Below, piece after piece: positions 47,235-49,791 of a stretch of 64,000 bases of DNA (position 1 is the first letter of the stretch; each line of letters starts with the position of its first letter). Where the stretch lies: contig LWCA01000062.1 of NCBI GenBank assembly GCA_001642005.1, positions 1,413 to 65,412 of the forward strand, in the 5' to 3' direction. A program made the translations under genes and the position numbers. A model generated the notes under the pieces. The model saw nothing but the letters and a program-made list of their open reading frames with translations. It was not told the origin of the DNA and made no database searches. The DNA is from Intoshia linei. Lineage: Eukaryota > Animalia > Orthonectida.

Positions 47235-49791
47235 TTATTTCATTGTTCTCCATTTTGACTCGGATTCATATTTTGAACATCCAACGTTAGAACTTGAGAT
47301 ATAGGTGTTTGGTGCAGATGTGACAGATAGTTTGATTTTTTTTGGTATGCTGTTAGATTGCAAGACTGATCGATCTGAGCATATTCTTGATTTTTGTTGC
47401 CATACATCTGAGGTTGGTTTATAGGTTTGTAAATTTCTCTGTAAGATAATGATTGCGTTGTCGGATAATTTGACATCAGTCCTGTCGTCTCCATTGGATT
47501 CCTGGAAATCTTCTCGTACATTTGAGTGTTCGGGTGTTGTTCCAATAACCAATTTATCGATTCCACCGTTGTGCATGGGCTCTGCGGTATTATCGAGTTC
47601 TCCATCTCTAGGTATGGAATGGCATATTCCTCGCTGATCATTGTTTTGTTCAGATTGTTGCGATTTTGCAACAAGTAATTTAGCCGTTGTGTCAAGTTTC
47701 TGTCTAAAAATGGAAATAAAAAGGCAAATAATTATTTAGGCAAAGCAATAATAAATTTTTTTTTACTACTCTAAAAAACACACAACTTGTACACAACTTG
47801 TACCTTTGACATTTTTTTCAAGTGTTTTGATAAGGTGTATAGTGGAATCAATAATATTGAGTTTGGTGTTGGGTTTGTTGACAATATCTTCAGATTTTTC
47901 AATCATCTCTTTGAGCGTCTGAAATGATTCATTCATATCTCGCACTCGCACACTAAAAAATTATTTTTGAACAAGGACAACCCAGTCGGTAACATTAGCT
48001 ATAACGCACACCTCAAATGGAACCAGTGTCACCCTATCAAAAACAATGAGTTTAAACCCTATTTTAGCAAAGCAACTATTACAATTTTTATTGAAAGAAA
48101 CCTAAGTTGACGGTTTTTATTTTGCAAGTTTACAATTACAGTAGCGGAACTCTGCAGTATCATGAGCTTTGTCATGTTCTGGCAATTGCCGCGAAAAGGG
48201 CAGATTATTTTTCCAAGTGTGTTATAGGCTTCGTTAATATCACGGACACGTAAACTATAATGTATATAATGTTCAGACGGGGCTGACTTACCGTTCTCTC
48301 TGGTTGTTAAGTTGTCTTCGTATAATTTCCTTCTTTGTCTTATTCTCTGGGGCGTTTAACTCAGTGTCTCTACAAATAATTACATTAAGACGTGTACATT
48401 AAATTACTTTTCTGTAGTATTTACATTGACAGGGTTAAATGGAATGAGTTTATTGTATTGGGCGTCAAAGGAATTATGAGCAAAATTGTCGTTTCCTGGA
48501 AATTTTTCTCTTCTGACGTAATGAGATTTTACTTCAAAGTTTTTGTATTCGTTTAGTTTTTCTTGATTTTCAATCACAATTTGAGAATTATTAAATTGAT
48601 TTATACTGTGTATATTTTGTTGTTCTGTCAGTAAACGTAACTGTTCAGAATTATGGATAATATTTTGAGCTCCTTTATTCAAAAAATCGCCATATACACT
48701 GGATTTTTGAGTATCGTCGTTCATAGGTTTTGATTCTTCAATCTAATTTCATTTGTTAGTTTTATTAAGTATTTGTTACGTTTTTTAAAGAGTTGCTTAT
48801 CAAGTTTTCGCAGTTGGTTAATATTTTTTCGTTCCAATCTAAAAATTATTTTCAAAACAAACACAATCAACCTTCTATTTGATTGATGTCTTCATACATA
48901 TCGGAGTCGATTTGTTTGTTTGGGTGTCCAGTATTATCATTATTAATCTACGTTTATATTTACATAACACTTTATTGTTTATTAAAGTAAGCTTAATTTA
49001 AAATTTCAAAGTAATCATTACAGTCTGCAATGCTTCGATTAAATTGCCCATGTATACCATACCCATTAAAACATGTTAACTGGCAGTCATTGAATTAAAA
49101 TCAAAAGCCCAGAAAACTACCAGCCTGAAGGTGACACAAAAAGACTGAGATTAGCCACTTATGTAATTCAATGGCTAAAAATGAATTAAAAGTTTTTTCA
49201 TCTTAATAAAAATGAGAGCAATCTGGTATTGCCTATCAGTCAATTCTGACAAGGGTGCAATATAAAAACAAAAAATACACTGTCATTGGATATCTGATTA
49301 TAGTCATTCGAAAATTCGGAATTTTGAATATCATAAAGGGATACAGAATTGTCAGTGTTTTTGCTGGCTAAAAGATAATTAGACTATATTTGGAAGGAAT
49401 ACTTTGTGAAATGAGTTTATCGTTAGCCACAGCATATGTTCCCACAGAAAAATTCTGAGACTCGTTTGATGTGTAAACATTATAATTAACAGCATCACAT
49501 TTTATATCATAGTCACAATTGTAAAATGTCATATTTTTCTTTTTAATAGAATCATTAACGTCTGAAGTGGACTAAAAATTAAATTATATACTATCATCTT
49601 ACATCATCTCGTAAGTTTTCATTAGAATCTAAAAAATGAACATTTACTTTACTTTTTGGAGATGAAATGTCATATTCAGACTCTGCACGAGAATCCTGAA
49701 ATAATAAAAAATTAAACAAAAAAATTAATACTATTACACTAGATGACCACTCGTTTTCTCTTTTTGAAGTAAATTTTGTTTCAGAATCCAT
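47235..49791 (-). CDS. Class I bHLH E-protein (daughterless/TCF3/4/12-like) with two alternative HLH exons and a dual-frame last exon
   Basis: Basic exon 48292-48369 ([10 protein letters not shown]). HLH-A 48102-48254 ([14 protein letters not shown]...MTKLMILQ). HLH-B 47804-47952 (VRVRDMNESFQTL...NTKLNIID...LEKNVK) then DRNL. Matches E-protein [21 protein letters not shown]...TKLLIL...QVRERNL. Confidence 0.88.

Follow-up and report, generated by a model that had tools for sequence, protein, structure and literature searches.

Introduction

E-proteins are the common dimer partners of tissue-specific basic helix-loop-helix (bHLH) factors, and through this role a change of E-protein isoform can reshape a whole regulatory network. 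The classical example is mutually exclusive splicing of the E12 and E47 exons of TCF3 (E2A) (PMC6795145, PMC6120717), whose isoform ratio is regulated. Here we describe an E-protein gene on the minus strand of a 64,000-nucleotide (nt) stretch of the Intoshia linei genome (contig LWCA01000062.1, positions 1,413 to 65,412), hereafter called the window. The gene encodes a class I bHLH protein of the daughterless/TCF3/4/12 type and has two alternative exons for the helix-loop-helix (HLH) domain, here named A and B, followed by a single last exon. All features and phases of the gene are given as read on the minus strand.

Like TCF3, this is an E-protein gene with two tandem homologous exons for alternative HLH dimerisation domains, and in both genes LRVRD opens the first copy and VRVRD the second. 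In TCF3, each of the alternative exons includes a basic region, and both continue into a common C-terminal frame; in Intoshia the basic region is on a shared upstream exon and the two HLH exons leave in different phases, so that the tails are wholly different. Taeniid cestodes also have a shared basic-region exon, ending GAA CG/gt (the slash marks the exon boundary), followed by two tandem HLH exons, of which the first (HLH1) is, at 52% identity, the closest relative of exon A in Intoshia. In contrast to Intoshia, including both of the 146-nt cestode exons would break the frame, and the evidence for their alternative use comes from DNA only.

The second group of related systems involves dual coding by alternative splicing, which is a well-documented class. 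The p16INK4a/ARF region of CDKN2A is an alternatively spliced dual-coding region. More than one third of human coding genes are annotated with frame-shifting splice regions, 537 of these regions have peptide or conservation support, and in 105 human transcript pairs both frames are constrained (bioRxiv 10.64898/2026.05.28.727796). TCF7L2 provides an example among transcription factors (bioRxiv 10.64898/2026.02.24.707805). As in CDKN2A, TCF7L2 and the 537 human regions, an upstream splice choice in Intoshia shifts the frame of a shared exon and gives different C-termini, with stop-free frames as the signature. Unlike those regions, the choice lies between homologous domain exons, which couples the domain swap to the tail swap, and the organism is a highly reduced invertebrate parasite, the arrangement being known here from a single species.

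The novelty lies in tying the exchange of homologous domain exons to a change of frame in a terminal exon of 466 nt, in a case where the ancestral state is clear. The literature yielded no paper on invertebrate alternative HLH exons behind a shared basic exon. The initial annotation of the window, made from the sequence alone, was not aware of any description of the arrangement; no paper was found on the Intoshia E-protein, but the dual-coding mechanism is well known and the A tail is already present in the public protein OAF71314.1. If the reading set out below is true, each dimerisation domain is hard-wired to its own tail, and the locus offers a tractable case of overprinting, in which a new protein segment was born inside an existing coding exon of a 41.6-Mb genome and the ancestral state is known. 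The finding also corrects a public gene model and suggests that tapeworm E-protein genes contain alternative HLH exons that have escaped annotation.

Splicing of the two HLH exons

RNA junctions were taken from spliced contigs of three public runs, X1, X2 and X3; the joints considered are the best 15 of 36, and rare forms drop out of contigs. The runs carry no RNA label on record, yet contigs in all three skip introns. Of the 15 listed joints, 14 have CT..AC ends, equivalent to GT..AG on the minus strand, which indicates that all three runs are complementary DNA. The shared basic-region exon is joined to exon A (48292>48254) at depths of 21 in X1, 101 in X2 and 0 in X3, and to exon B (48292>47952) at depths of 54, 50 and 537, respectively. 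Exon B is joined to the last exon (47804>47703) in X1 and X3 and was not seen joined to it in X2, while the join of exon A to the last exon (48102>47703) was seen in X2 and in neither of the other runs.

All four junctions anticipated by the initial annotation are therefore present, including 48102>47703, on which it had staked its scheme of one basic region joined to two HLH exons, each with its own frame of the last exon. The RNA joints bear this scheme out. A and B are tandem homologous exons spliced to the same upstream and the same downstream exon, and the junction phases together with the observed joints place the same nucleotides of the last exon in two mRNAs in different frames. It is very likely that, at the RNA level, both splice forms exist and that the last exon is read in a separate frame by each of them.

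The B form is carried by an X3 contig of 2107 nt that runs from the upstream exons through the basic-region exon, B and the last exon to the gene end, without A. The A form is carried by an X2 contig of 544 nt in which 30 nt of exon A are joined to the last exon. This 30-mer from the 3' end of exon A occurs once in the 41.6-Mb genome, and the two sides of the joint share just 4 letters, which excludes a false join in the 31-mer graph. Thirty letters is the remainder expected at a branch in such a graph, and the other branch at exon A is a contig leading into the A-B intron (47924-48131, depth 34 in X2).

By contig depth the isoform balance differs from run to run, with the A form prominent in X2 and absent from one parasite run, X3. 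X1 and X3 have the same organism label and X2 a different one. As all three runs show the same two differences from the assembly (47382 and 47606), X2 is taken to be the same species under another label, and may be host tissue holding the parasite.

Neither an A>B joint nor a basic>last joint is among the best 15 of the 36. The reading frame does not enforce the exclusion of one exon by the other, since exon A is 153 nt long and a message including both stays in frame. In the minimum-energy fold of 47940-48300 (minus strand), the 37-nt basic-A intron pairs with the final part of the A-B intron, a long-range stem that would loop out exon A. The fold energy is ordinary (z = 0.25, with 57 of 100 shuffles folding as well), and the inverted repeats are short and AT-rich; they lend no support to such a stem, although one may still form. 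A message without either HLH exon would likewise enter frame A, and no such event is among the joints listed.

Coding character of the last exon

From its acceptor at 47703 the last exon extends 466 nt up to the frame-A stop. As the initial annotation had reported, two of its frames are open, for 155 codons (frame A) and 153 codons (frame B), while the third closes after three codons and contains 12 stops in total. The annotation had also proposed a codon-shuffle test, and this places the second open frame beyond chance: shuffling the codons of either frame gives 8.1-9.4 expected stops in the other, and none of 20,000 shuffles was stop-free. Another 19 open frames, each 120 codons or longer and lying within ~100 kb of the I. 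linei genome, served as an empirical null. In this set, 153-codon windows averaged 8.6 stops when read in the +1 frame and 20.8 when read in the +2 frame; no window had fewer than 4, and second open runs reached at most 75 codons. The double open frame of the last exon is more than chance.

A codon-usage score trained on 26 long open frames of the I. linei genome gives 0.23 for frame A, 0.13 for frame B and -0.75 for the third frame. True frames of the genome score 0.26±0.11, and frames shifted by +1 and +2 score -0.59±0.21 and -0.85±0.29, respectively. With stop codons left out of the score the order is unchanged (A 0.10, B 0.00, third frame -0.26). By codon usage both frames look coding-like, A slightly more so than B. 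The two differences between the assembly and the RNA are too few to inform on selection.

The initial annotation drew attention to the two stops lying 5 nt apart. Their positions (47240-47242 and 47235-47237) are correct, but the closeness is no independent coincidence, because the AATAAA at 47239-47234 directly follows the TGA of frame B and contains the TAA of frame A. Both frames stay open until the message ends, at the poly(A) signal.

Domain content and C-terminal tails

The best relatives of OAF71314.1 are TCF3, TCF4 and TCF12 of vertebrates, molluscs, rotifers and cestodes, and all 45 other matches are E-proteins or unnamed bHLH proteins. The E-protein signature RRxxNNxRER-xRVRDIN...TKLxIL is present, with TKLMILQ in A and VRVRDMNESF...TKLNII in B. 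The two exons are 33% identical and both pass the Pfam HLH gathering score of 20.7 bits, A with 24.5 and B with 27.1 bits. A search of the whole genome (41,603,068 bases in 3,520 contigs) with exon A returned only an unrelated bHLH gene besides, and a search for a second copy of tail A returned none.

The N-terminal 300 residues are lineage-specific, and similarity by BLAST to the Taenia and Pongo E-proteins is confined to the bHLH region. The activation domains AD1 and AD2 were not found, Pfam matching only HLH on the 585-residue OAF71314.1, a search that short motifs may escape. In the stretch that E-proteins conserve directly behind helix 2, exon B followed by frame B gives LEKNVKDRNLTQRLNYLLQNR, which keeps LE..V..RNL only, and the A form is without the motif. 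BLAST of either tail against the 45 E-proteins gave nothing significant, and a protein atlas contained no usable match for tail A or tail B. A length-windowed protein search with each tail alone also found no homologues, a result of little weight because such a search leaves out the full-length protein.

Relatives and the likely ancestral exon

The basic-region exons of Taenia solium and Echinococcus granulosus end CGT GAA CG/gtgggt, with position and phase matching those of Intoshia. They are followed by two HLH exons in tandem, 146 nt each (Table 1), both ending R G/gt in phase 1, and the next exon starts AG AGA AAC ATG AAT CCC, reads ERNMNPK and has a single tail frame. In the rotifer Adineta steineri the introns lie at these same positions, and one HLH exon, also of 146 nt, exits in phase 1 to a single tail frame. 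Since cestodes and the rotifer share it, an HLH exon of 146 nt that exits in phase 1 and feeds a single tail frame is the likely ancestral state. Exon B of Intoshia, at 149 nt, has one extra loop codon and retains the ancestral phase. The frame switch appears to be derived in Intoshia, given that both tapeworm HLH exons are 146 nt long and feed one tail frame.

A tree of 48 alignment columns places exon A in a clade with Taenia HLH1 and mollusc HLH domains (96/98 support); exon B is a long, unplaced branch in the same tree. The HLH duplications of Intoshia and of the cestodes may go back to one event or to two.

Between the two HLH exons, the public models of these two cestodes either run on through the intron or are oddly spliced, and the taeniid pair, judged from its sequence, looks like unannotated mutually exclusive exons. 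Variation next to the basic region also occurs in Haliotis, where TCF4-like isoforms (P0005 as against P0013, P0015 and P0017-P0022) differ just upstream of NNARE, with SPEGKQERERLRRQA as against RYVASKTTPLVKAAL. There, the N-terminal half of the basic region seems to be exchanged through an alternative exon.

In exon A of Intoshia a GT lies 10 nt upstream of the donor (AAC C/GT CAA, 48110-48112, minus strand). Its use would give an exon of 143 nt leaving in phase 1 into the frame-B tail. This donor (48111-48110) is unused among the best 15 of 36 joints, and may be a remnant of the old donor.

Alternative interpretations

Overall, a dual-coding last exon under alternative HLH exons is probably the best explanation of these data. 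Several points weigh against it. The case was picked from a scan of very many windows, a procedure that selects for rare chance events. The joint of exon A to the last exon is carried by one contig of one run, its short side of 30 letters is one under the 31-letter bridging rule, and contig depth is not an isoform count. With joints known for the best 15 of 36, an A>B joint or other donors may exist. Neither tail matches any family or any other E-protein tail, and tail A has no relatives among 1.84 billion protein representatives apart from its own gene's OAF71314.1, the single protein returned by an exhaustive search (100% identity over residues 431-585). An orphan tail and a junction seen in one contig of one run are also what would be expected if the A>last mRNA were real but a neutral or non-productive by-product of a shifted donor, its open frame being an unselected rare accident. 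The low language-model recognition value of tail A (854) points the same way, but this measure does not discriminate, because tail B scores just as low (960). Against such a by-product, the probability that a second frame stays free of stops for 155 codons is ~1e-4 or less, fewer than one chance double-open exon of 150 codons is expected in a genome of this size, and the frame that is open is exactly the one fed by exon A, a conserved alternative exon. In addition, exon A is as deep in X2 as the flanking common exons, the codon usage of frame A is in-frame-like, and exon A is better conserved than exon B, which would be unexpected for a junk isoform. We consider a by-product of this kind unlikely.

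The public model describes a different protein. OAF71314.1 ("hypothetical protein A3Q56_00888 [Intoshia linei]", UniProt A0A177BCR6, 585 residues) sets A and B in tandem (...NRQL-S-VRVRDMNE...), stretches exon B 35 nt into the intron (window 47766-47803; GTSCVQVVCFL) to a donor at ~47769 and continues in frame A, the frame that its gene finder preferred for the last exon. Were this structure right, the gene would encode one two-HLH protein with the A tail; the 153-nt length of exon A, which keeps the frame when A is placed before B, allows it, as does the restriction of the known joints to the best 15 of 36. None of these joints agrees with the model, however, neither A>B nor the extended donor of B being among them, and the exon structure of OAF71314.1 is therefore probably wrong. 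The 2107-nt X3 contig uses the 47804 donor in a message without A, the X2 contig joins A straight to the last exon, and the tapeworm tandem-HLH models that read through an intron are annotation artefacts of the same kind. A single tandem protein is accordingly very improbable. Exon A might instead be a poison or regulatory exon, retention of the A-B intron giving a short E-protein that ends 15 codons past the HLH domain. The contig at 47924-48131, which contains the end of A, the whole intron and the start of B, reaches depth 34 in X2; another retained intron of the same gene is ~6 deep. Unspliced precursor would nevertheless give the same coverage, as would the excised 398-nt intron of the A form, within which exon B lies, and a poison exon would leave the 155-codon openness of frame A unexplained; we give this possibility very little credence.

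Proposed mechanism

Our proposal starts from the two splice forms in the RNA. The common N-terminus, ending in the basic region, is spliced to either exon B or exon A. Leaving in phase 1, B reads the last exon in the likely ancestral frame, ...LEKNVK-DRNLTQRL..., and A, leaving in phase 2, reads the same 466 nt one base earlier to give a predicted tail that is unrelated. The difference may go back to a shift of the donor, exon A now being 153 nt long as against the ancestral 146 nt. The A-frame tail would then have arisen by overprinting of the older tail exon after this shift, with selection keeping the frame open. If both proteins are made, the switch would alter the dimerisation surface or partner choice, through the HLH domain, together with the function of the C-terminal tail.

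It seems fairly likely that both tails are made and selected, and the lack of stops together with the codon usage lends indirect support to translation of, and purifying selection on, both frames. A fuller account, which we offer tentatively, is that in a reduced animal with a single E-protein an old HLH pair became a switch, that a shifted donor overprinted a selected tail of 155 residues, and that the balance of the two forms varies by sample type.

Exon structure and flanking genes

The exons of the gene are listed in Table 1. For the basic-region exon, both HLH exons and the last exon, every coordinate and phase of the initial annotation proved right. Introns are mostly 31-42 nt long. Exon A starts T TTA CGT GTC CGT GAT and ends ...NRQL; exon B starts T GTG CGA GTG CGA GAT, completing R-VRVRDMNESF..., and ends ...NVK. 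The common part through the basic region comprises 953 nt of coding sequence, and the two forms share their first 317 residues and a split arginine codon. From exon lengths only, the B form is predicted to have 521 codons and the A form 524. Retention of the A-B intron would close the A reading frame after 15 further codons.

Table 1. Positions of the exons and associated features of the I. linei E-protein gene, of a neighbouring gene, and of the tandem HLH exons of two cestodes. Intoshia positions are those of the window.
Feature	Positions	Strand	Description	Evidence
Exon 1	49738..49791	-	coding start, ATG at 49791; MDSETKFTSKRENEWSSS	open reading frame (ORF) list; joint 49694/49737 (cut +1) in all three runs; matches OAF71314.1 N-terminus
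Exon 2	49603..49695	-		RNA joints; phase tracking; OAF71314.1 match
Exon 3	49403..49571	-		RNA joints; phase tracking; OAF71314.1 match
Exon 4	49279..49367	-		RNA joints; phase tracking; OAF71314.1 match
Exon 5	48872..48947	-		RNA joints; phase tracking; OAF71314.1 match
Exon 6	48780..48838	-		RNA joints; phase tracking; OAF71314.1 match
Exon 7	48408..48742	-	335 nt; lineage-specific, without Pfam match	RNA joints; phase tracking; OAF71314.1 match
Shared basic-region exon	48292..48369	-	78 nt; ends AAC CAG AGA GAA CG/gtaagt; exits in phase 2	joints 48369>48408, 48292>48254, 48292>47952
HLH exon A	48102..48254	-	153 nt; spiralian-type E-protein HLH; ends CAA CTT AG/gtttct; exits in phase 2	Pfam HLH; joints basic>A (X1, X2), A>last (X2)
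A-B intron	47953..48101	-	149 nt	retained in X2 contigs at depth 34 and in X1 contigs at depth 8
HLH exon B	47804..47952	-	149 nt; divergent HLH; ends GTC AAA G/gtacaa; exits in phase 1	Pfam HLH; joints basic>B (X1, X2, X3), B>last (X1, X3)
Last exon, frame B	47243..47703	-	(D)RNLTQRLNY...NGEQ; 153 full codons; TGA stop at 47240-47242	sequence reading
Last exon, frame A	47238..47703	-	(R)QKLDTTAKLLVAK...KWRTMK; 155 full codons; TAA stop at 47235-47237	identical to OAF71314.1 residues 431-585
AATAAA poly(A) signal	47234..47239	-	directly 3' of the frame-B stop; contains the frame-A stop	sequence
Convergent, highly covered gene, exon parts	43227-43256 and 47070-47220 (terminal exon)	+		contigs of all three runs
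Taenia solium TsM_000675700, tandem HLH exons	L011: 11659-11804 and 11931-12076			
Echinococcus granulosus, tandem HLH exons	L012: about 11540-11685 and 11808-11953			

Downstream of the E-protein gene lies a convergent gene on the plus strand, for which contigs of all three runs join 43256 to 47070 over a 3.8-kb GT..AG intron (43257-47069) containing Tc1/mariner-like ORF remnants at about 44990-45520. Its terminal exon adjoins the E-protein mRNA at the 3' end or overlaps with it, and the assemblers consequently fused transcripts of the two genes into one contig. At 51168-51943 many contigs from all three runs, with depths in the thousands, variant letters and internal joints, suggest a multi-copy element that is expressed. 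Upstream of the E-protein gene, and also on the minus strand, lies a separate gene (50068-50700) that has introns at 50244-50463, 50511-50545 and 50610-50643 and ends at ~50068-50077, leaving ~280 nt between its 3' end and the E-protein ATG at 49791.

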